A DNA stretch of 64,000 bases from positions 8,866,001 through 8,930,000 of the forward strand of contig OZ176053.1 of assembly GCA_964247055.1 (NCBI GenBank), given 5' to 3'. This stretch comes from Paragordius varius (Eukaryota; Animalia; Nematomorpha). The notes beneath the pieces are model-generated. The model had not been told where the DNA came from and searched no databases. It worked only from the letters and a program-made list of their open reading frames with translations. Position numbers and translations under genes: made by a program. Below, piece by piece: positions 7,390-57,700 of the stretch (position 1 is its first letter; every line of letters begins with the position of its first letter).

Positions 7390-7613
7390 ACAATAAATAT
7401 TATACATTAATTTATTTAAATTGGAAAAAAAGTTAATATTTCAATACCTTATTTAAACGAATATGGTGGTTTATTTATTCGCCTTATACGTTAGTTAAGT
7501 AACTGTTTTCTATTGGCAATCTACTAGTCTAAAGGCTTTTCGAAGACGAAGCACTATAAAATGTTAAATAGAACTCTTATTGATTTATCTTCTAATATGG
7601 TTATAAAATAAAT

Positions 7614-8533
7614 CAGGGCTTGGAACCGGTAAAAAGTGGAACCGGGACCGGGTCAGTTCTTGAACAAGTGGAACCGGGACCGGGTCGGTTCTTGAACAAG
7701 TGGAATCGGAACCGCGTTGGTTTTTAAGAATTTAAAAATAGAACATGGCGGTTCCTGAAATTTCGGAACCGGAACCGTTTTGGTTCCTTAAAAATTTAAC
7801 GGTTCTGAAATCGGTTTTTTACATTTTGAACCGGTTCCATTTTCTGTTCCTGACTTTTAATTAAATGATTCACAAAATTATTATCATAGTAATACAACCA
7901 AAATTAAATCAAACAATTTATTATGAATTGCCAAATGTATTAGTGGAAGAAATATGTGTAGCATAATAAATGAAACAAATTATAAAAATATAGGAAAATA
8001 TATAAGTACAAAGGTCTAAAATGAGAGTTAAATTAAGTATGGAATCTAAAAAAACTTTTAACTAAAAAATTATTGCACCAAGCATTTCGCTGGTCAAACT
8101 GCTTCTCAAGTCTGAAAATAGAAAATTAAGTGTGAAAAATTCCTTTCAACGGAGACCTATATATACGAATATATGTATTATAAATAAACTTGAGTTATGA
8201 CTTAATTTTTTTAGAAGAGCCGAATCGTCCATAATTCAGAGAGTATCGCTAATATTAGCCGTTTAGTTTTAGGTTTGAAATATATTGTAATGTGTAGTGG
8301 TACAATCAAATTTAAATAATAAAATAAAATTCAAAAATCATATGGGAACCAGTAATTTAGGGGGTAGAACCGGAACCTGATTGGTTCCTGAACGGTTGGA
8401 ACCGGAACCGGGTGTTCCTAAAAATTTATAGATAGAACCGGGGTCATTCCTGAAGTTTTGGAATCAGTACTGGGATTGTTCCCGGAGAAGTGAAACCGAA
8501 ATCCCCGGAACCGGATTCCGGTTCCAAGCCCTG
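7614..8533. mobile_element. Non-autonomous hAT-like DNA transposon (MITE)
   Basis: Perfect 16-bp terminal inverted repeat CAGGGCTTGGAACCGG (7614-7629) / CCGGTTCCAAGCCCTG (8518-8533). Dense subterminal GAACCGG motifs, a 32-bp tandem duplication at 7634-7713 and an AT-rich non-coding core. No clean 8-bp TSD. Confidence 0.8.
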
Positions 8534-8634
8534 GATTAATGCTTAAATTTGTGTACTGAATAGATAAATTAGGGGCTTATGATATCAGTTCTTGTCTCAA
8601 ACCATTTCAGTATAAAAACGCTTTTTAATTCTTT

Positions 8635-10473: not shown

Positions 10474-13033
10474 TTAAAGAAAGATAGTGAGATTTTATTG
10501 ATTTTTATATTTATATTAATTAAATATATCAAATAATTGATATTTAAGTATGCTTATTTAACAATATATTAGAAATTGTTAAACGTACCTCCTTACAACA
10601 TTAGGATTTTGGCATATCCAGTTATGTCGAATAACAAAACAATCATGCCTTGTGCAAAATATGCAAATAAAAAAACATCTTACGTTTGGATATTAATTCA
10701 TTGATGAAAGAAAGTGTAAAACAGTTAAAATTTTTTGAAATTTCCAGTATTAAAAGCTATCTATTTGAAATGTGGCAAAATTTATTTCTTGATTATATTT
10801 GATTGAATATATTTTTAAATAATAAATATAAAAAAATTTATAATACAAACTTTAGAAAAAAAAGACATTATTAGTGAAACGCAAGTTTCAGCATTATTTT
10901 ACAATCTCCAATATCACATGATATTTACTTAGGTAAAAAGTGTATATAATCATGACCATGGACTGACTGGGTCTGAAAATGCACAACCCTATTGTTATTA
11001 TCATTTTTGTATCTTCAATCGTTGATCGATCGTGGCTATTTGAATTATTATTATTGTTAATAATATTGTTATTAAAGAGTCAGCATTTCATTTATCACCT
11101 TTGGTGTTTTTTTATGGGACAGGGTAAAGTTAACGACTATTATTAAAGAAGGGAGTGGTGTATTTCATAGCTCCAGAAAGACGTGTAAAGTAATATCTAT
11201 TATTTATTCATTTAATCCAGCAATGTGTTCATAAAAGTTCGATTAATGGACATTGTGACAGTTGTGCTTTTAAATTCTGAAATTTCAGCTTTAACCTTTT
11301 TAGCTTTAAAAATTTAAATGCCCTTTACGTATTTTTATAATAATTTGGGATAAAAAATGATTTAATAGCGATTTTGGTACATACGCCTTTATTTTTGCCA
11401 TCGCTTTTAATATTAAAGATCGTGATATATGTTTCATATTAGCTATATAATGCCCATAATATCCTATCAGCGTGCCAAATTATGGAATTAACGTATGAAT
11501 GAAGATAAATGTCGAGAATAGTGAAATAAAAAAATGAAGATGAAAAATAATAGCAAATAAATGATGACACATTTGGCCACAAAACTAAGTCCCTGAAGTA
11601 AATTATTAAAGCAGCTTTTATGGGTTAAATTTAATTTTTGGGTATTTTTTGTTTAAAGGCAAAAATCTTAGCGACCACTGATTTTAATTTATAAAAGGAT
11701 GCACCCTCTAAAAATACTATATGAAATTAATGTGTCAATGTAATTTGAAAAGCCAAAATTACATGGATTTGATAGGTGTCATAGCTATCCGATTAGCGCT
11801 TTTTATAAATAAGCCTATTAATTAGTTTTCTCTGTAACATAGCCAATTCATGATTATGTGGCGTCCAACTAACGAGACTACACTATATCAGTCATAGTAG
11901 TTATTCCAGTAAAACGGGAAAAATTTTCTATGCTTTTTTCTTTAATCACTACTTAAGTAGGGTGCCACTTTCCAAAATACTCAACCATATGAAAATAACG
12001 TGATTTAAGCATTTCGCCTAAATTATGATAAATAATGTGGGCGTTTCCTGTATAAAGGCATTTTGCCCATGGGCATGGCCATATCTTCGCCTGTAAAATA
12101 CGGAATATGAAAATAATGTGGCTTTAAGGCATTTAAAATTATGAATTTGTTATATGAGGAACCGGTGTTTAAATTCTGATAGAATCATATTGGCTTAAAA
12201 AGTATTTCCATGTGTATTTCCTAATTTCAAAAAAAACATAGTGATGAACCAAAAAAAATGTTCCGATTATCCCTTGAAGTAAAATTAATACATACAAAAA
12301 ACATGGCAAAGTAAATTTTTTAATTTTTATATAGTTATATTAAGTTTTTTTTATAAAAATTAAAAACGGAGAATTGGAAACGGATGTGGTTTTTATCGAG
12401 TCAATCTTTGCCGATGGTTCTTCCGGTCCCAACCATTTTTTATATTTGGTTCCATTGTTTTTTTTATCAAATGGTTGGAATTTTGGTGGCAACTTTTTAA
12501 ATTTAGGCATAGTCTGTAATTTTGGAACAATGTGGATTAAGTTTAACAAACATATGAGCATATATTTGTTACAAGCTGCCTTATCTAAAAAATGGAAATA
12601 TACAGTACAAAATTATAAAGTTTTACCCTGTATCAAAATTTGAAACAAAATTTTTTTAGATTCTATTTATAAAAACGGTGTAACAACCTTTGGATATTTT
12701 ATTTACTGAAACGGTGTAAAAATACATAATAGTTCTGTTCCGATTCATGGTAATCATAAAATAGTAGGAGTAGCATCATTGTTAAGATTACAATCCTCAT
12801 ATATTTAATAATGTTTTATAAAAACAAAAATAGTAATATTTGCCATGAACTGATTCAATTTCAAATATAAATCATATATAACTGAGATACTCCTATATCA
12901 AGAGCGAAAACGATACCCTTTATAAATACAAATTTGTCCCTATCAATTAGTTGATTAACGTGCAGTGTATAAAAAAAACTCAGGTATATATCATGAAATA
13001 TTATACGATATTTTTGTATGCATATCGCAATAA

Positions 13034-14234
13034 TCTATATATTTATAAAAATGGAAAATGCTGGCTTTGTGATCTGGTACAGGAAAACAGGTAGAGCCAA
13101 TCAAATCCAAATATCGAAAAAATATAATCATTAATAAATGTCCCGACAATAGCTTCGCCCTTTTTTTGAAATAGGCCCCCAGTTCGGGCCCACCCCGTAT
13201 GAAAAACGAGTTTTTTTAAAAACAGAAGTCCACAAAATCGTGTTTTTGAGACAATTTTCCGGAGAGCGTGTTGGACCAAATTTCAAATATGATTTTTGTT
13301 TACTTATTTTCGATTGCGCCGAACATAGTTGAGTCACTTTTTTGATTTAGGCCCTCTTTTTACCCCTCCCCCCGTAAAATGCCATTTTTTCAAAAAACAA
13401 AGTCCACAAAAATAATTTTTTAAATCGATTTTTCGCCCTAGGTATGAGACCGTAAAAATTCAATAAAGATTCCACGTATTCCCTGTTAAAAAGCAAAAAT
13501 TTTAGTCCACCGTTTATATGATGATAGCTGCTGGGTAAGGAGCTACCCGCTAAAAACTGATTTTTCATATAACTTTGTGATCTGTTTCTGGAAAACCGGT
13601 GAAGCCATTCAAATCCAAACATCGAAAAAATTTAATCATTAATGAATGCCCCGACAATAGCTTCGCCCTTTTTTCGAATTAGGTCCCCAGTTTGGGCCCA
13701 CCCCGTGTGAAAAATGGGTTAAGTCAATTTTTTGGAGAACGTGTTGGACCATTCAATTTCAAATATGATTTTTGTTTACTTATTTTTGATCGCGCTGAAC
13801 ATAGTCGAGTCACTTTTTTGATTTAGGCCCTCTTTTTACCCGCTCCCCCCGTAAAATGCCATTTTTTTCAAAAAACAAAGTCCACAAAAATAATTTTCTA
13901 AATCGATTTTTCGCCCTAGGTATGAGACCGTAAAAATTCAATAAAGAATCCACGTATTCCCTGTTAAAAGGCAAAAATTTTAGTCCACCGTTTATTTGAT
14001 GATAGCTGCTGAGTAAGGAGTATCTATCATATGTATAGCATGTTAAAAGATATATGGATATTAAAACATTATTTATGGTAATCTATATATTTATAAAAAT
14101 AGAAAATGCTGGCTTTGTGATCTACAGGAAAAACGGTAGACCCATTCAAATCCAAACTTCGAACCCCCCCCCCCCCCTTCCCAGAAGTCCGAAGGACTTC
14201 CTCGGGCTGCGTAGCAGCACGAGATTCACGCTAG
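13034..14234 (+). mobile_element. Composite non-autonomous Helitron
   Basis: 5' A|TCTATATATTTATAAAAAT at 13034, about 500-bp internal tandem duplication, and a second 5' end at 14082. The 3' hairpin GCTGC-GTA-GCAGC is followed by CTAG|T at 14231-14235. Homologous to 19203-19805. Confidence 0.85.
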
Positions 14235-15048
14235 TGATGTTATATTTTTAAAAAAGAAAAAGAATTTATTTTGTATTGGTGTTTTGTATCATCGACATAA
14301 ATAAAATTCTCGGTATGTACCAATAAACATGTAAATGATAAATACTGCTCATTATGGGGCTCGCTTTGTTCTTCAGCTTGAGGGAAATTTCAAATACAAA
14401 AATATAAATTGATTATTCCAAAAAAATGTTATAATAAGTAATTCAGTCTTATATTTAAATCTAATAACTATTTGTTAATGTCCATATATTTTGCGAATGC
14501 GGCTCGTCAGATTTTTTGGTCCAATAGCAGCCTGCGAAGCCATTTGTGTTGGACATTCATGGTATTATAGATGTTATCACACATCGAAACACTGTATTTT
14601 ACCATTATTTTCTTCCAATTATATAATGATGATCGAATACCGCGTAAGTTGGTAAAAACACCTATATGAGACAGAATCGCCTTAGCATTAATTTTGATTT
14701 TTTTAATTGTCCAAAATTGAGTTAATTAGTTTTAGATTAATGCCGATTGACGGTGAAGTTATAACCAACATATAAATTTAGCTAGGACCTGATAAACAAA
14801 ACATATTTATTAATTTATAAAAAAATTACTAATATTGGACAAATAAACGAGTGGGTTAAAAAATCAAGCAAGCTTTCTTAATGTTAGATTAGTGCCACAA
14901 TTTCAATTTTGTTTGTATGGTATCTTTCGATTAATATCATCGTTCTTTATTGATTTTATCTATAAAATAAATGACAATGCTTCTCTTTTTATAATGCTGA
15001 AATAAAAATATTTATGCGCAATTATTTAATTAGGCAAAATAAAAAAAT

Positions 15049-15121
15049 TGCCGAAACCCGGGATTGAACCAGGGACCTTTAGATCTTCAGTCTAACGCTC
15101 TCCCAACTGAGCTATTTCGGC
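15049..15121 (-). tRNA. trnF-GAA: tRNA-Phe (GAA)
   Basis: Reverse complement GCCGAAATAGCTCAGTTGGGAGAGCGTTAGACTGAAGATCTAAAGGTCCCTGGTTCAATCCCGGGTTTCGGCA (73 nt): canonical eukaryotic tRNA-Phe cloverleaf, no intron, followed by an oligo-T Pol III terminator. Confidence 0.98.
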
Positions 15122-15770
15122 ACGTCTCTAGACTATATATTTGAATAATTTATATTTAGAAATCATTAAAATTAATTTATCATTGCAAGGTACTGATTGG
15201 TAAAACATTGATTTAAGGGCCAAAATTCGTCGCTATCATATGTGAAAGTGGCAATCCTATATACCCTTGTTTGAATAAATGTGTTTGAGTTTCATCATAT
15301 ATTTGTTGCTAAATTTAGCTAAATTTGATGAAACGTATAAAGCAAATTAATTAAAATGGTAAATCTAAATTGTTATAAATACATAATAACCGAAAGACAA
15401 AATTGAGTTTCTACGCACTACAGCTTATTGGTAATAGTAACTACTGACAAAACCTGGCATGAATTGACACATTTGATTGTTTTAATTAAATTAATTATCA
15501 TAGTGTTATATGACACCAAAATTTGGCTAACTTTCATTTGTTTAATAAAAAAAATTGGCTATCATTATCTACCCGTGAGCTAGTTGTACCCCATATTATT
15601 AATTATGAAAAGGAAATTTGTGCCAAATATTATTGATTTTATTGGTAAAACGTTCCAAAAAATGGTTGTAATATTGCATAATAAGTTGATCCAATAGTAA
15701 AAGTGTTTATCACAAAAATAATATGCTATTGATTATTATTATTATAGGGTAACCTTGCCCAAAACCTTGG

Positions 15771-15777
15771 TATATAA
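15771..15777 (+). promoter_or_regulatory. Candidate TATA box of microprotein gene 1
   Basis: TATATAA 83 nt upstream of the ATG at 15854, in a locally GC-enriched context (ggTATATAAgcgtgcgcgc). Confidence 0.55.
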
Positions 15778-15853
15778 GCGTGCGCGCTACTCTTTATTTC
15801 ATAAATTATTTTTATCTTTGAGTACATTCTAGTCAACCTCATTCAAACACATC

Positions 15854-16145
15854 ATGCCTAACCAAGCCGGTCAGTCTTTATTCTTATAATTATTTATATA
15901 TATTTTTGTGAGATTTTTATCTATCTAAATCTGTGGTTAAATGAAATAATTATCGTGTAACAGAATCACACGGACACGGAATGGGAGCCGCCGGAAAAAG
16001 CAGCAAAGCCGCTGGTGCTGGAGCTGCCGGAGCCGCCGGATCAGCTGGAGCTGCTCACCAACACGGATCTGCTGGATCCGCTGGTGCCGCAGGATCTGCC
16101 GGAAAGTGCCAAGCCAACGCTGGCAAAGCCTCACATAAAAACTAA
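15854..16145 (+). CDS. 65-aa Gly/Ala/Ser-rich microprotein (2 exons)
   Basis: Exons 15854-15869 and 15964-16145, with a 94-nt GTCAGT...ACAG intron, give MPNQAESHGHGMGAAGKSSKAAGAGAAGAAGSAGAAHQHGSAGSAGAAGSAGKCQANAGKASHKN*. Supported by GC-rich coding DNA in an AT-rich background, a TATA box and AATAAA at 16336 and 16355. Confidence 0.75.
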
Positions 16146-16481
16146 ATTTTTTGCCTTTTTTTTAGTTCTTTATTTTAACAAAAAAAGTTTTTAATTTAAT
16201 CTCACACTATACACACACACACCACTCACACATTAACATTACCCCTAACCTATGTGCTAACACGCATAATTGTATGCTTAATTGTAACTCTTTCCCCTCT
16301 CTTGTGTAAGTCCAAAAAATAATACCCAAAGTGTAAATAAATGTGTAAAAATTAAATAAATCGTAGTAATGTTCGATATTGAATACCATTTATTACATTA
16401 TTGCAAAAATTTTCACAAAGCTAATGTTAAATATTGTGTCAATGAGACAAATTCAATGGTCTATTCATTCCTTTTCCCATC

Positions 16482-16685
16482 TCATTTGGGTTTCGGCTTG
16501 GCAGCAGCCGCTGCTGGAGCTTGTTTTTGTTGAGCGGCTTGTTGCTTTGCCTTGTCATCCTAAAATATTTTTTTCACAAAATTTTATGTAGTAGATGAGT
16601 TATCAATTTGTATATGTATAGATAAGAGTATTATGAAATAAAGGAAAATAACTTTTTGTTGGGCTTTTCCTTGTTCTTTGGACAT
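16482..16685 (-). CDS. 36-aa Lys/Gln/Ala-rich microprotein (2 exons)
   Basis: Exons 16685-16653 and 16559-16482, with a 93-nt phase-0 GT...TTTTAG intron, give MSKEQGKAQQKDDKAKQQAAQQKQAPAAAAAKPKPK*. TATA box at 16771-16778; AATAAA on the minus strand at 16394-16389. Confidence 0.7.
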
Positions 16686-16770
16686 GATATTGGTTTTAAT
16701 GGATAGTTGTATGAATTTGTAAGTATTTGCTTAAAAGTATATTGAATAGTTTTTATGTACCTTAGATCTG

Positions 16771-16778
16771 TATATATA
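16771..16778 (-). promoter_or_regulatory. Candidate TATA box of microprotein gene 2
   Basis: TATATATA about 86 nt upstream of the ATG at 16685, next to a TTTTAGGC/GCCTAAAA inverted repeat at 16781-16808. Confidence 0.45.
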
Positions 16779-18159
16779 CTTTTTAGGCGACTTAATTGAG
16801 GCCTAAAACACTAATTTATTATATCGCCTAAGATACTAATTTATTTTAACTTGTAGTAAATTGTCTGGTTTGGTTATACAACCATAATTGTTTATATATA
16901 ATGCGCCTAATTGTTTAGCTAAATTTTGTATGTGACCTTGGATATTATATTTTTGTATCGTGACAATCACTTTTGCGCAGTAAATTTCTTTACAACTATT
17001 GATTTCTTATATTATTGATTTTATTTTTTTATATTAAATATATTATAGATAAAAGTAAAATTTTGTCCAATAATGATCATAGCCCATTTAATTACAAAAA
17101 ATTTAAGCAATTTTGTAAACTTGGGCAGCAACTTCATATGTATCTTGTAAAACTACATAATATAATTGATATTTTATTTAATGCTAAAATGGGTGTCATA
17201 GTTAATATATAATCTTTTTTTAATATCGTAATTAAAATATTCATAATCAATATTTGTTAAAAATTGTAATATAATATTAAAATATTTGTTTTGATTTGCA
17301 AATTAAGACTACCTAAAAAACATTCATTTTTTCAAACCCGTATATATCAATATGCGCCACACGGTTATTAAAATATATTTTGACCTTTTTGATATAAAAA
17401 TGGTTTAATTAAATATACCAATTGCATGCATGAAAATTATTAGACCCATAGATTAATTTTCTATTTCCAATGTATTAAATAATATAGTTAAAAATAATTA
17501 TATTTAGGCGTTTGTGTAGGCCGCTGTTTTTCCGAACATCGTTGGCGTGTATCCATCGCCAATAATTTAAGTTTCCCCAATTTTACAATGAATATCCAAA
17601 AATTTTAGGATGTAACTTCTTTTCTATAGTTTAATAAATTTAAAGTTACAAAAAATTTATAATTGCTTTGAATTTTCCATTTGAATATATAATTCAAAAA
17701 AACATAATTATGTTATACAATTATTTAGAATATCCAAAAATAATATAAAATCTTATTAGGTAGTGTTTTACCCCAGAGCAATGTAAAATTTGAATATCTA
17801 AAAAAAATATTTATGATATTGGGCCATTAAGAATATGCCTTCTTTAGCCTTTTAGGCGCATGATTCATAAAAGAAAGGCAAATAAGTGTATATTATGGTA
17901 AAAAATATAAGTAATCTTTAGAAAGCTTTATTACTTAAAAACAAAGAGTTATTAGATAAAACCAGCTGTCTGTTTTAGTCGTATTTTCAGGGTTATCATA
18001 TCCTGAACTTAAGAACTTGGAAAAGTAAAAATTTTAGCTATTTTATCTGAAAGAACAATGCTTGATAATTAATTTTTACGAAAACAACTTTGAGAACTGT
18101 AGTTAAAAACTATATACCCCAAAATGTAATCGTGTGCAAAAATGAAAAAATAGGCTTTA

Positions 18160-18391: not shown

Positions 18392-19202
18392 CTTTAAACA
18401 AAGATTAAGAATGCAAAATATTCAAAACTAATTATGTTATCCTATTTTCGATAAATTAATTTATACAACAACATTACTATATACCAAAATGATAAATGCG
18501 TATAAATAAAAAAAAATTTTATTTCTCTATTAGCCAAAAAAACATATTCTTTTCCCAGAGATACTAAAAATATAATTAAGAAAACGCGAAAATTATCAGT
18601 TAAACACAAGTTTTTTATTATAAATAATCATAATTTATTTATTGGATAGAGTTTGTTTTTAGAAATCACCCTCACTGCAATTTTACGCATTGCGTATGCG
18701 GTATTTAAATCACATTATCCCAATAGTTTTATAACAATCTTGATACGAAAGAATCAAGTTAATAAATGAGACAGCATATTTGATTAAACCCTTAAAATTG
18801 TTTTCTTATTTTTTAAGACAAACCAATGTATAAATGCACGACTCAATGTCGAATCATGGAGTTTTTATAACGGTGAATTCAGAAGTTTTGACTGTTTTTT
18901 ATTTTTCCAAAATCGTGGCGTTTAATGATTAGAAAACTGGATTACCCATTAATATAGTTAATTTTACACATATAAACACGTCGATCGGAAGTTTAAATTA
19001 GTCTCTACATCTATCACCTGAAAAATTTCGTTTTCTGAAAAAATACTAACTTACGATGTTTTGTAAAACTTCAATAATGGACAAAATAGGCAATCTTGAA
19101 TTGACCACCCCCCCTCGTCTCACTAATGTGAATCCTCCTAAATTTATATGATTTTAAAAATTTGTGAGATATAAAAGTATTTCTAACAGCTATTTTATGG
19201 AA

Positions 19203-19805
19203 TCTATATATTTATAAAAATAGAAAATGCTGGCTTTGTGATCTGGTACCGGAAAACCGGTAGACCCATTTAAATCCAAACTTCGAAAAAATATAATCAT
19301 AAATGAATGCCCCGACAATAGCTTCGCCCTTTTTTTGAAATAGGCCCCCAGTTCGGGCCCACCTCGTGTGAAAAATGGTTTTTTTTTGAAAACAGAAGTT
19401 TACAAAAATCGTGTCTTTGAGACAATTTTCCGGAGAACATGTTGGTCCATTCAATTTCAGATATGATTTTTATTTAGTTATTTCCGATTGCGCCGAACAT
19501 AGTCGTCTCGCTTTTTTAACTTTGGCCCTCTTTTTACCCGCTCCCCCCGTAAAATGCCACCTTTTTCAAAAAACAAAGTCCACAAAAATATTTTTTGAAT
19601 CTATTTTTCGCCCAAGTCAACAATATATTAGTATGAATGCTCCGTTTTAAAATTCCTATAAAATCATATCTATTAAATAATGTTTCGAAATAATCCACAT
19701 ATGTGGATCATTTTATTGTCCCGTTTTTCCAATAGCCCTCCCCCTCCCCTCACAGAAGTCGGAAGGACTTCCTCGGGCTGCGTAGCAGCACGAGACTCAC
19801 GCTAG
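19203..19805 (+). mobile_element. Non-autonomous Helitron, single-unit copy
   Basis: A|TCTATATATTTATAAAAAT ... GCTGCGTAGCAGC hairpin ... CTAG|T. High similarity to 13034-14234. Confidence 0.85.
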
Positions 19806-20388
19806 TATTTATATAAAGAATGAATAAATAACACGCAAGGGTGGATAATATTTTTCTATTGGAATTTGTTTGGATTTATTTGTATCATTTTTAATCCTTA
19901 TTTCAAAAAATATTTCATCCAGTCTCTCAGCGATGCGTGAAAAGGCGTTAGAAATAAACTATTTGTGAGGGTTTATTCCCTTAATAAGGATTTATTGAAC
20001 TATCTACTGGGAGACTCAATTAATTATATTCTGAATAAATATCCTTTTCAAAGTTTTTTTTTCTTACCATCTTTAAACATCAAAACTGTCATCTTCCTTT
20101 CTCAAGCCATTTCTATATTATAATTATTCCTTACTTAATCTTTCCTAATATATCGTCAGCTAAATTTTTACTTCTCCTTCTTCAAAAACTTTTTTCAGAT
20201 TTTCACCTCCAAGGTTCTATATTATACATGGTTGGTTGATTAACCGCACTTACATATAACCTTCTATAAATAAAATATATATAATTAACCATATACACTT
20301 TATTTTTTGAATCGTCTGTTTATGTAATACAAGGGCTTAATACTACACCTAAATACTACAATTTAGTCTTTTAAGTATTGTTCTAAAT

Positions 20389-51700: not shown

Positions 51701-54700
51701 ATTCCCTATTCATTTATTTTATCTCGGTCAGTCACAAATATGGTTATATCTAAAAAATATATATTTTAATTTTGTTGAAGTGATTATCCAAAACGCAACC
51801 AGGCATAGCTAATATATATAAATAAAAGGATTATCCTTCGAAAAAGCAATAAATCGACATCGATCTTTGCTACTATAATAATATTCTGGCCTAAAATAGA
51901 CATACATTTTTTGTGTATTAGTTTATTATTTTCAAATATTCTTAAGCGTATGAGAATAAGAAAGGAATCTTTTATTTAATTAGAATTAATTTAAAGTTTT
52001 AAATAAATGCTTACAAAAAGAGGAATAAAATTTATCCCTTCCGTGCATAAAAATTGAAAAAGTGACTTTTTACAATACGAGATGAAATTAGATTTATAGC
52101 TTCAGTTCCATAGACAAGCATCGGTATAAATTATCTTCAACATGTTTTCTATAATTTTGACACAACCTCTTGTCCTATCCTACGTTCTCCACCATAATTA
52201 TTTTCTTTCTTGCTTAAATATAACCGCTTATGTATTGTTTAATGCCGTAATAAGCCCCTTACTAGTGTTAATGCATGTACTCTCGTAAAGATTTCAATCA
52301 TATAGTTGAAATGGGCATCAAATCGGATCCATATTCTCTGTTAGTTTTGGAATACAGTAAATTTAAGCTTTAGGCTGCGCATAACAAAGGAGACTGCTCT
52401 TTGCTACTGAAAAACGAAGAGCATCTTTTATTATTTTAAACCCGAATAATCCTAGTTAATTCATTTCATAGTACTAGTGACAGGAGGAAATATATTGAGC
52501 CCAAAATATTTGGTTTAATTATTTTAAAAATATTACAAATTTTATTTTTTGAATTGATTATTTAATTAAAATTGCTTAACTTCAATTATTAACGTGTTTT
52601 TTCGGAAAAGCATATGTGCCCTCTATGTATAAAATCAAGGTTACGAATTAAGCCTTCTTTCATAACACTATTAGATGCTAGAGCTTTGTTGGCTAATGTA
52701 CTTTCATTTTTCCCTATTGTCAGCACGCATATTAATAATTAGATATTTAAGGGTAGAATTCAAAAAATAATAAAGATCTAAATACCAATTAAAGGTTAAA
52801 ATTATTAATTAAACTCCAGCCAAAAAGTAGTTTGTAAATCTGTTTGTATAATTTTAAATATAGGAGCTTTGGGCGTACTATCGTCAAGCACTGGTATCAT
52901 GATTGGCGGTTTTATGATGAAAAAAATGAATGTACGGTTACAAGGGGCATTACTAATATCTATTGTGGGCCTATTGATTACCTCATTTAAAGCAGTTGCT
53001 TTGATGAATTTAAAATGCGAAAAAATACCGATTGCAGGAAGCATGTCAATAGAAACAAAGTATAATACATCTTACATATCATTTATTAGATGTTAATCAG
53101 TTTATATATTAATTATTACATGCAAATTATGACTATTTAAAATTTGTAAAGAAGAAAATGATCTTGTGCTGCCTTTTCCAACATATACAATTTTTGAGCT
53201 TTAGGTGCGACGAGAGCCAAATGCGTTTCGTAACCCGAACCCTTTTCAACGCGTTTAGCACCGTATGTTACCTTGCCATCAAATTCGTTGACAGGGATTT
53301 TGATATCTGGATCTATTTGTTGTATAGTTACGCCCAAGTGTTCTTCAATATCAGCTAAGCATTGTATTTCATTGTACCATATGGTACAACCACCTTGTGT
53401 TATAAGATTGGTGTTTCGACAATTTTTTCCCCTACTGGGGCATTTATGGAACCAAACCTTTTCTGGAACAGCTGACACAAAAGATATTGCAAGACCCATT
53501 CGGTCAACCCGGCCTGAACGTCCAATACGGTGAAGGTAATTCGATTTTTCATCGGGAAGTGTGACATTAATGACATACGGTAACCCGGTTATATCTAAAC
53601 CACGAGCAGCAACATCAGTGCATATAAGAAATTTAAATTTATTTGTCTTAAAAGCTTCGAAATTTGATTTCCTTTGTGCTGGAGGTATATCACTATGTAA
53701 ACATATACAATTGTTGGCACCCAAACGATTATTTAAAAAGGTGCACAAGTTATCACAATCTAACTTGGTACGACAAAATATCATGGCTTTATCCATTTTA
53801 TGTTCATTAATAGCACGTAATACATACTCGCCTTTTAGAATTTTAACAGCTTCCGAAAAACTTTCCTGCGTATTGAAGTTAGGGCCGACCCGATCATGAG
53901 AGTGTATTCCGTCTGTTTGAATGGGTCGTTTAATATTATGCCATAATTTATCAAGCCTGGGATCAACTGTTACAACCACGTGATGTATGGTTTCAGGGAC
54001 GTTATCTTGTCCTTTTAAATCTATCCAAATGGGAAAGTGCATGATTGAATCGGCCAATTTTTTGACATCAAAGTTATGAAGGGTTGCTGAACAAACTATC
54101 ATTTGCAAACGGGTTCCAACAGGGAGCGCATGATTAATTTTGCTATGCAAACTGGTCAAAAACGGCGTTTGACCATTAATGATAAGTCCATCGATTTCAT
54201 CAATTATAAGAATTTGGCATCTTTCCAAACTGACTATGTTAGAATTGATGAATTCTTCTATACGCCCAGGGGTGGCCACAATGATTTCGAGGCCATTTTG
54301 AATCTTAGATATTTGTTGTTGCGAATCAATACCACCCACAACTAATACGTCATTAATGGGTTCCTTTATAAACTTTTTAAATACACAAATATTTTTGTAA
54401 GTTTGTTCTGCCAATTCTCTGGATGGTTCAATAACTATGGCCATCGGACCATTAATCCTTTTGTGGGATCTTTGTTGATTAACTTTTTGATAAGATATAT
54501 AATCGGCGTTAGCTTTAGACAGTGGTATACTATTAGACAGTACATTGGGATATTTAAAGGGTTGATCTCCAAAATTAATTATAATACCAGCATTTTTTAT
54601 GCATATTGCAGGATAAAATGGTCCTTGAACATGAGATATGGAAAAGGCTGGTCCTAAATATTTTCCATTCTTGGAGAATGATATAACATTTTGGTATAAA

Positions 54701-57700
54701 TCCAAATAACAGCAAACAGTGTCTCCAATAGTAAAAGATTCACCATAGTCATCGAATTGCCTATTGTTTGATTTTTTGCCAGTTCCACCAAAACCAAAGC
54801 CAAGTGCATCACAACCAAGCTCATAATTGGCATTTTTTAAGGACCACCCAACTCTTACCACGCCAGTTTCCGTTGTAATGTGGACTTCAAAATAAAAAAT
54901 ATCAGTGCTGTTACGCAAGATAGCTTTATTAGAGCGACAACCCAGCCAGCGCTGAGTGCGATTTTCACATATTAAACCAGTCTGATCTATAGATAATCCC
55001 GTACTTGAATCATAGGGATTGAGTTTCCAATTATCATCGTCATTTTGAGTTGGTGCTTTTCCTCTCATATTTTCCACGATGATTTGTAATAGAGGTAAAC
55101 AAAATGCTCCTGTTTTTCCACTCCCCGTTTCAGCTGCCATTAAAACGTCTCCACCTCCTAATATTAAAGGAATAGCTTCAGCTTGAATGTCAGTAGGCAG
55201 CAACCAACCGAATTCCTCCGTTGCCTGCCCTAACTCAGGTAAAAGCCCCAATTCTTCAAACGCTGCCATGTGTATTAAACAAAAAAAGAATCCAACCGAT
55301 GTTAGATATAAATATGCATGGATTATTTTTATTTTAATAGTATAAAGCAATTAGATATCATTACTATACTATTTCTTACTAAATTTAATAAGACAACAAT
55401 CCTTTTTAAGAATGTTAAAGTATTTTTTATAAAAAATATATAAAATGGTACAACCACAAGTAAACTTAATAAATGACATTATATTATATGTTGATAAAAA
55501 AGCATGATTATTTTTTTTATTTCTCAGAATTAAATCCTAAAAAACAGCTATTAATATTTTCGTTTAGAAATAATCAGGTTTTATCAAAATTTTATTTTTT
55601 GTGGGGGGAGATAGGGAGTTGTACCTCACGGCGATTTGGATAATAATTGATATTAGGCTAAATTCAAGATATTGTCATTTAGGCGCTCAGATATAAAAGC
55701 ATAGCAAATTTCTTTTAAATTAAATTAATATTTTCGTCTCTTGTATTATCCTAAAATCTTACATTCAGTTGTCTATACTCCATCGTGCTTTAACTTAATT
55801 AGAAATAATTTTATATATTAATCTCATCTAACATTATTATAAACAGAAAAGATGGTTTATAATTATTTTTATATTTAGCTATACACATGTCATCTTCTTA
55901 TGTTCGGGTTTATCGATAAATAAGTGATATCAAGTGTTTTTGAATAAATTTTTTTTTATATTTTGGTGCATCATTATTATATAAGTGCAAATTGCAGTGG
56001 TTTAATTTGTTTCATGGTTTTAATTTTACTTGTTATTAGACGGGCTTGGGGTTGCCAAAAACCCTCATTTATGTATGAATGTATATCCAAGTTTTAAATA
56101 TCAAATTACATGCAACAAATTTTCGGATATAGATTTTGAAATCAGCTGTTTGTCACAATTGTGTTTTAGAGCCCATGTTGTACTCTTTATAGAAACTGTA
56201 TAAAATATAAGTTAATTAATAAAAACGATGATTATAAAAAAATTAAAAACAGTAGTTTATATCTAATAGTTTACTTACAACAACTCTGGCTGACAAAACT
56301 ACCACAAAATATAATAAAATAAAACATGAAAAGGTAAAAAGGGATTAACATAAATCATGAACGCATTTTTATCATCATATAACAACAATTTTAAATATTT
56401 TATTATCTGAAATTTAACACACACACCTCCTGATTTCGAAAATAACTTAAATTATATTTTAACGCAATAAATACTTTCCAAACTAAAATGCAACAAATTT
56501 ATTTTGAATTAGGTGAATATTGTCGGCTTTTCTGATTTTTATTGTGTGTTTGACTTAAGATCATTTAAATAAGAAAAATCATTAAAAAATATTTTATTGG
56601 TTTTTTAAATGTTTTACTTATATTATTACTCACAAAACTACCCCACATCAAATTATCCTACATACAATATTTGTTGGATAGCAAATGGGACTTTTATGAA
56701 AAATGTAATCGCAATTGTCAATGCAGTGAACAATTTTTTGAACCGGTGTGTGGGAACTCGAATCAAAAAATATATTTCAACCCCTGTTTCGCTGGTTGCA
56801 AACAGTATGTGCTAGATTCTCGCATTAAGGTAAACTATAAGTATTGTTAATACAGTAAAAATTGAAATTATACAGAGAAAACATTTAAACTTAAAGACAA
56901 ATATTTTTTACAAAAGACAACCATACTTTTTTAAACCTTAATTTCTTTTATATATATTATAACAATTTTAAAAAATAACTGATTGGATCACCAATTACAT
57001 CTCAATTTTATACTTTACAGTTTGTAAAAATGAGTATATAAAAAAATTAAGTTTAAAAAGTTCGATTGTCTTTTGAAAAATATATTAGTCTTTATGTTTT
57101 TTGGTTTAGGCATACACAAATTGTTCATGCATCCTGGAAGACATGGTTGGCATTGAAAATGTGTCGATGTTAGATTCATTATATGATTCCTCATCGGCCC
57201 TTCCTGGTGTTTGCCACAAAAGATGCGATCAATTTTTGCCATATCTTATTGTGCTTGCTGTTGGCAGTTTTTTAGCAGCACCATCAATCGTTGCCGTAAT
57301 GATGGTAAAACTAAGGTAATTTAAAAGTAAAAAATATTAATTAGTAAAAAGCTCATATGGGGCAATTGTCTTTAAGAATGAATATCACTTTTAATTACCT
57401 AACGTACAAGTTGATGTTTATTACTGTTTTAATAAAAGATTTAAGTTCGATTTTTCATTTTAATATATTGATTGTAAAGGAAGAAGACGCTTGGGCTTAA
57501 ATTATGATTTTATAAGATTTTTGCGATCTATCAATTATTTTGTATTTGAAATAGATGTGTGACAAAAGAAGAAAAACCACTTGCCTTGGGCTTTTCCTCT
57601 TTCCTTATGAGCATTCTAGGTAATGTATTGCCTATTTTTTAATGCCTATGTAGCTATGTGGGTTCTCTCAAATATTTTCCTTATTGAGTGGAGGTTCTGC

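Follow-up and report, generated by a model that had tools for sequence, protein, structure and literature searches.

Two convergent candidate microprotein genes with GC-rich second exons in the AT-rich genome of a horsehair worm

Two short islands of high guanine-plus-cytosine (GC) content, located in a 64,000-nucleotide stretch of contig OZ176053.1 of the horsehair worm Paragordius varius (Nematomorpha; GenBank assembly GCA_964247055.1), have the appearance of second exons of two very small protein-coding genes, here called gene 1 (plus strand) and gene 2 (minus strand). The whole 64-kb stretch is referred to as the window, and positions are counted from its first letter. On balance we lean towards the view that both loci are separate, convergent, single-copy two-exon microprotein genes with signals of the RNA polymerase II (Pol II) type, a view that is based on the sequence. 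Taken individually, gene 1 is probably a real coding gene as modelled, while for gene 2 the scales appear to tip only slightly in favour of the proposed model. In this regard, the original prediction, which had described small two-exon protein-coding genes by appearance, with Pol II-type signals, is borne out, and both loci can be viewed as plausible but ordinary orphan microprotein genes. In the proposed architecture each gene would be read from a TATA-type promoter through a short leader free of upstream ATG codons into a tiny first coding exon, followed by one intron of approximately 93 nt, a GC-rich second exon and an AATAAA signal.

Animal genomes commonly encode small disordered proteins that are restricted to a lineage. 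If the two gene models are correct, two orphan microproteins would be added for a poorly studied animal phylum, and peptides that lack any hydrophobic residue would provide clean test cases for the action of disordered small proteins, in particular for shielding as opposed to polyanion binding. In a genome with a GC content of 27%, short GC-rich islands flanked by splice signals also represent a practical route to tiny genes that lists of open reading frames (ORFs) miss. Current knowledge is otherwise left unchallenged by these loci.

Gene models

The interval 14800-17800 was read on both strands and the gene pieces were translated directly (Table 1), which verified the predicted coordinates of the ATG starts, of the two GT..AG introns and of the stop codons, the latter lying 336 nt apart in convergent genes. 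Both ATG codons, at 15854 in gene 1 and at 16685 in gene 2, are found in an ATCATG context with A at position -3, and the two models comprise 65 and 36 codons, respectively. Transcription of gene 1 is predicted to start at about 15801 (CATAAA), and its leader, from the TATA box to the start codon, contains no upstream ATG. Two details of the original prediction had to be revised. The distance between TATA box and ATG, given as 83-86 nt, is 83 nt for gene 1 and 93 nt for gene 2 when measured alike from the first T of the box, and the statement that the ORF list holds only wrong-frame or antisense readings here does not apply to the full list, which includes a right-frame reading of gene 1 exon 2 (54 residues) as well as a read-through of gene 2 exon 1.

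Table 1. Features of the two candidate genes and of the neighbouring transfer RNA (tRNA) gene, in window coordinates
Feature	Position	Strand	Details
Gene 1 TATA box	15771-15778	+	TATATAAG; read directly; 83 nt before ATG
Gene 1 coding exon 1	15854-15869	+	16 nt; MPNQA and first base of split GAA codon
Gene 1 intron	15870-15963	+	94 nt; phase 1; GTCAGT...AACAG; 21% GC
Gene 1 coding exon 2	15964-16145	+	182 nt including TAA stop; 60% GC
Gene 1 candidate poly(A) signals (AATAAA)	16336-16341 and 16355-16360	+	about 190-215 nt past stop
Gene 2 TATA box	16778-16771	-	TATATATA; read directly; 93 nt before ATG
Gene 2 coding exon 1	16685-16653	-	33 nt; MSKEQGKAQQK
Gene 2 intron	16652-16560	-	93 nt; phase 0; GTTATT...TTTTAG; 19% GC
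Gene 2 coding exon 2	16559-16482	-	78 nt including TGA stop; DDKAKQQAAQQKQAPAAAAAKPKPK; 53% GC
Gene 2 candidate poly(A) signal (AATAAA)	16389-16394	-	88 nt past stop
tRNA-Phe(GAA)	15048-15122	-	ARAGORN; Rfam tRNA at 69.8 bits; divergent from gene 1

The AATAAA signals of the two candidates lie at distances comparable to those in the EF1A and actin genes of the same genome, in which AATAAA occurs 55-190 nt past the stop. A short (AC)n run is present at 16211-16232, inside the predicted 3' untranslated region (UTR) of gene 1.

Composition, codon usage and transcription signals

The contrast in base composition is the first line of evidence for coding function. In a window of 27% GC, within an assembly of 110.6 Mb in 44 contigs (73% A+T), the coding parts of gene 1 and gene 2 reach 60% and 53% GC, as compared to 21% and 19% in the respective introns and 23-28% in the UTRs, and these steps coincide sharply with the proposed splice sites and stop codons of both genes. 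The earlier description of the region as a GC-rich island therefore holds for the coding parts and fails for introns and UTRs. No island of the entire window is richer in GC than exon 2 of gene 1.

The second line of evidence is codon usage, evaluated with a table built from the EF1A, actin, DDX1 and OATP genes of this genome and one long ORF. The proposed frame of gene 1 exon 2 scores -1.4 bits versus -40 or worse in the other five frames, and that of gene 2 exon 2 scores -7.6 bits versus -19 or worse. The GC fraction at third codon positions (GC3) is 0.39 in gene 1 and 0.36 in gene 2. In each island this lies below the fraction at first positions (GC1) and also, with a clear difference in gene 1, below that at second positions (GC2), as is expected when amino-acid choice maintains G+C against AT-biased mutation. 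Synonymous codons are mixed (GCC/GCT/GCA and GGA/GGT/GGC). Codon usage gives no backing to the suggestion that the genes are highly expressed: the codons GGA, GCC, CAC and AAC are more frequent in gene 1 than in EF1A and actin, and the glycine codon preferred by gene 1 is GGA versus GGT in EF1A. Codon bias was discarded as proof of high expression because gene 1 departs from EF1A and actin in its preferences, which could equally well stem from repeat units of 9 nt.

As to the upstream signals, TATA-like octamers are so frequent (451 in the 64-kb window) that a TATA box is weak evidence on its own and is supportive only together with other features. Likewise, approximately 40% of null windows offered an ATG mini-exon of compatible phase ahead of a fixed acceptor. 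For each gene, 2.4-2.6% of 18,172 nulls drawn from real sequence combined such a mini-exon with a TATA box 60-110 nt upstream and an ATG-free leader; the significance of this figure is overstated, because the criteria were set after the loci had been seen.

With regard to splicing, the verified introns of this genome span 22-195 nt, a range into which introns of 94 and 93 nt fit; they include those of EF1A (22, 24, 58, 61 and 64 nt), of an actin gene (82, 195 and 118 nt) and of OATP (about 84 and about 120 nt). Verified donors are weak and often begin with GTT (GTTTGC, GTTTTT and GTTTTA, in addition to GTATAT), so that the GTTATT donor of gene 2 is ordinary. Within the EF1A locus itself (G000:C1:9913089-9916427, minus strand), two GT..AG introns are ultra-short, one of 24 nt between ...KEAAE and MGKGSF... 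and one of 22 nt after ...TGTSQ, and one of the three introns of 58-64 nt apparently begins with GC and not with GT.

Besides the late choice of null criteria, several features weigh against the interpretation of both loci as coding genes. Gene 2 is only 36 codons long. In gene 1 the purine-rich acceptor (GTGTAACAG) has a poor pyrimidine tract and the GTC donor is absent among ten verified donors of the genome, and these two are the weakest signals of the gene models. Several frames remain open in low-complexity GCN/GGN sequence irrespective of coding, and such sequence can arise from slippage of 9-nt units. Neither product has a homologue or paralogue in the searches reported below, hence conservation lends no support, and the function suggested for the products would derive from composition alone.

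The corresponding alternative holds that both loci are non-coding, the islands being neutral low-complexity DNA (expanded GCN/GGN and CAA/GCN) or parts of non-coding transcripts, and that ATG, GT, AG, TATA and AATAAA occur by chance in a genome that is 73% A+T. This explanation, which we regard as doubtful though deserving of serious attention, draws on the abundance of TATA-like octamers and of compatible mini-exons, on the several open frames across the island and on the blank searches for homologues, paralogues and families. It is also favoured by a weak 9-nt tandem periodicity inside gene 1 exon 2, detected by Tandem Repeats Finder (73-78% matches, 3.6 copies), and by the fact that some other GC-rich islands of the window are transposon pieces and not exons. 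On the other hand, the full upstream combination occurs in only about 2.5% of nulls for each gene, or about 6e-4 jointly if the two are independent; a single frame is far better on the codon usage of the genome in both islands; and composition changes exactly at the AG acceptor and at the stop codon. The islands are moreover single copy, unlike those derived from repeats, and a signal of RNA structure is absent.

The possibility that the islands represent known or structured RNAs was considered and rejected. Rfam returned no match at the gathering threshold, and at E <= 1 only a sub-threshold small nucleolar RNA match (23 bits versus 44), while the fold z-scores were -0.16 and -0.70.

It could also be argued that the GC-rich exons are real and misconnected, namely that they belong to larger or otherwise spliced genes, for example with a signal-peptide exon located farther upstream. 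In keeping with this scenario, exon 2 of gene 2 contains no ATG and needs an exon upstream of it. Nevertheless, an inspection of all ATG-to-GT segments, from the tRNA gene to the acceptor for gene 1 and over 740 nt upstream for gene 2, revealed no compatible exon with a hydrophobic leader or signal peptide. Furthermore, both second exons end in a stop codon followed by AATAAA, and a TATA box is suitably spaced from each proposed ATG, rendering a misconnection of the exons quite improbable.

Predicted products and searches for relatives

Composition was summed over the exon pieces. The predicted product of gene 1 has 65 residues, among them 21 Ala (32%), 15 Gly (23%), eight Ser, five His, five Lys and a single Cys, with a net charge of +4 and a mean Kyte-Doolittle hydropathy of -0.46. 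That of gene 2 has 36 residues, including ten Ala (28%), nine Lys (25%), eight Gln (22%), three Pro and one Gly (2.8%), carries a net charge of +6 with a mean hydropathy of -1.66, and ends in ...PAAAAAKPKPK. Leu, Ile, Val, Phe, Trp and Tyr are missing from both, and beyond Ala and Met neither contains an aliphatic or aromatic residue; signal peptides and membrane segments are likewise absent. Since hydrophobic residues are absent, a hydrophobic core is lacking, and the predicted products must be soluble, intrinsically disordered, basic peptides of the cytosol or nucleus. In the exon-2 peptide of gene 1, Gly occupies every third position in two runs (G19-G28 and G34-G46 in exon-2 numbering), and an AlphaFold model computed on the single sequence contains no secondary structure (predicted local distance difference test, pLDDT, 54).

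Relatives were sought with the exon-2 peptides taken separately (59 residues for gene 1 and 25 for gene 2). For the gene 1 peptide, no relative was detected by a word-indexed search of 5.8 billion proteins or by a full HMMER search of 1.84 billion representatives, and no match was obtained in JGI metagenome contigs, PDB sequences or the ESM Atlas. Its only Pfam match (hmmscan, E <= 10) was Collagen, at 17.5 bits and thus below the cut-off of 27.2, a result that can be attributed to the runs with Gly in every third position. The gene 2 peptide, a short query of 25 residues, had no match in Pfam, PDB or elsewhere in its own genome. The earlier characterization of the products as low-complexity sequences with neither signal peptide nor recognisable family is in agreement with these Pfam, PDB and protein searches.

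When the DNA of the block with both genes and the two exon-2 peptides were used as queries against the 110.6-Mb assembly, the only match was the own locus. The block is consequently single copy, no paralogue of either peptide was detected, and the island lies outside any multi-copy transposon, membership of which had been named beforehand as an observation that would speak against the genes.

These blank searches constitute weak evidence, because the closest database relative is distant even for a conserved protein: the best match of the intronless DDX1 gene of the window (53140-55269, minus strand) comes from Gordionus sp. (Nematomorpha) and is only 61% identical, with arthropods next at 55-56%. 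A search across such a distance would miss orthologues of peptides as tiny and as low in complexity as these. Published nematomorph genomes measure 200-300 Mb (10.1101/2024.06.11.598342), as compared to 110.6 Mb here, and the present genome is at best distantly related to them. A lineage-specific status of both products is compatible with the blank searches, which have barely probed it.

Arrangement of the two loci

The original prediction viewed the two genes as a mirror-image, co-regulated cassette. The likeness between them is confined to a loose layout, as their pairwise alignment consists of AT-rich noise, and an inverted duplication was rejected on the grounds that no alignable DNA exists between them. 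Similarly, the 400-nt regions upstream of the two genes share no more 8-11-mers than random windows do. With neither DNA similarity nor a promoter motif in common, the genes provide no support for duplication or for co-regulation. Their predicted 3' ends abut or overlap by no more than about 30 nt. As far as can be judged from the sequence, the tail-to-tail layout is a matter of neighbourhood rather than of a cassette that arose by duplication or is demonstrably co-regulated, and the data support neither a special mechanism nor a coupling of one gene to the other.

Genomic surroundings

The canonical tRNA-Phe(GAA) gene lies 732 nt from the gene 1 ATG in divergent orientation, matching the approximately 730 nt originally predicted. 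It serves as neighbourhood context for gene 1 only, and a functional link between the two is without support. Another neighbour is a CDC23-like gene at about 2-7 kb. Dispersed-repeat copies at 13022-14248 and 19191-19819, made up of pieces that are 74-93% identical and, at 13.0-14.0 kb, partly in tandem, lie on either side of the block comprising the tRNA gene and both candidate genes.

In the window, 11 copies of the heptamer TTAGGCG were counted where 3.65 would be expected. Five of the copies are found within 1.1 kb (16783-17858), just upstream of the gene 2 TATA box, and two of them form an inverted pair at 16783 and 16825. This cluster may be a telomere-repeat-like promoter element or the remnant of a repeat. 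A further small GC-rich island at 17501-17566 (45-50% GC) contains no long ORF and no Rfam match. At 7609-8546, an element of about 940 nt with inverted ends (CAGGGCTTGGAACCGG ... CCGGTTCCAAGCCCTG) is filled with GGAACCGG repeats and, from its sequence organization, looks like a non-autonomous DNA transposon.

Comparison with known systems

The weak resemblance of gene 1 to collagen (PF01391) involves its Gly-X-X runs and the profile match described above. The two differ in that the score remains below the family cut-off and in that the runs of gene 1 extend over at most five triplets and are devoid of Pro, unlike the long, uninterrupted, Pro-containing Gly-X-Y stretches of collagen.

Spacing of this type is also known from the polyproline-II antifreeze protein of springtails, which contains about six Gly-X-X segments, intramolecular disulfides and a secretion signal. 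Gene 1 is similar to the springtail (snow flea) protein in having Gly at each third residue in two runs, and is different from it in possessing two to three short segments, one Cys, a hydrophilic N-terminus and no predicted fold. This similarity leads to a further explanation, in which the Gly-X-X runs of gene 1 would form polyproline-II-type helices as in springtail antifreeze proteins and the pair would serve freeze or desiccation tolerance of larvae or cysts. Apart from the Gly spacing and the sub-threshold Collagen match, such a role could appeal to the biology of the group, freeze survival having been reported for gordiid larvae and cysts (Bolek et al. 2013, J Parasitol 99:397, cited in PMC6892959). 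Nonetheless, the Gly-X-X runs are only two or three and short, a single Cys excludes intramolecular disulfides like those of the springtail protein, a signal peptide is absent, the AlphaFold model is structureless and of low confidence, and similarity to solved structures is limited to composition. We thus consider a freeze or desiccation role of this kind very unlikely. The broader version, in which two unrelated microproteins free of hydrophobic residues, gene 1 with its polyproline-II-type runs among them, would make up a dedicated stress-protectant unit of the horsehair-worm lineage that is co-induced in freeze- or drought-tolerant larvae or cysts and whose expression is coupled by overlapping 3' ends, appears equally far-fetched.

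For the two orphan microprotein genes as modelled, a parallel may be sought among proteins that may act by physical shielding. Hydrophilins are defined by a Gly content above 6% and a hydrophilicity index above 1, i.e. a mean Kyte-Doolittle value below -1. Gene 1 has the required Gly content and falls short in hydropathy, whereas gene 2 shows the reverse, and both properties are combined in neither product. No family of late embryogenesis abundant (LEA) proteins was found for either exon-2 peptide by hmmscan against Pfam-A (E <= 10). What the products share with hydrophilins, LEA proteins and the heat-soluble, disordered Hero proteins is that both are small, very hydrophilic or Gly-rich, without hydrophobic residues, predicted to be disordered and not secreted. 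Physical and non-enzymatic action would be the most likely mode; as abundant disordered peptides, the products could provide shielding or solubilisation, much like hydrophilins or Hero proteins.

Tails of the histone H1 type, rich in Lys, Ala and Pro, condense DNA and are not Gln-rich. The product of gene 2 differs from histone H1 in being Gln-rich and in lacking a globular H1 domain or homology detectable in Pfam or PDB. In composition only, it resembles an H1 tail or a protamine, with its end ...APAAAAAKPKPK and a net charge of +6 in 36 residues, and the Lys/Ala/Pro tail of gene 2 might also bind polyanions such as nucleic acids in the way that histone H1 tails do.

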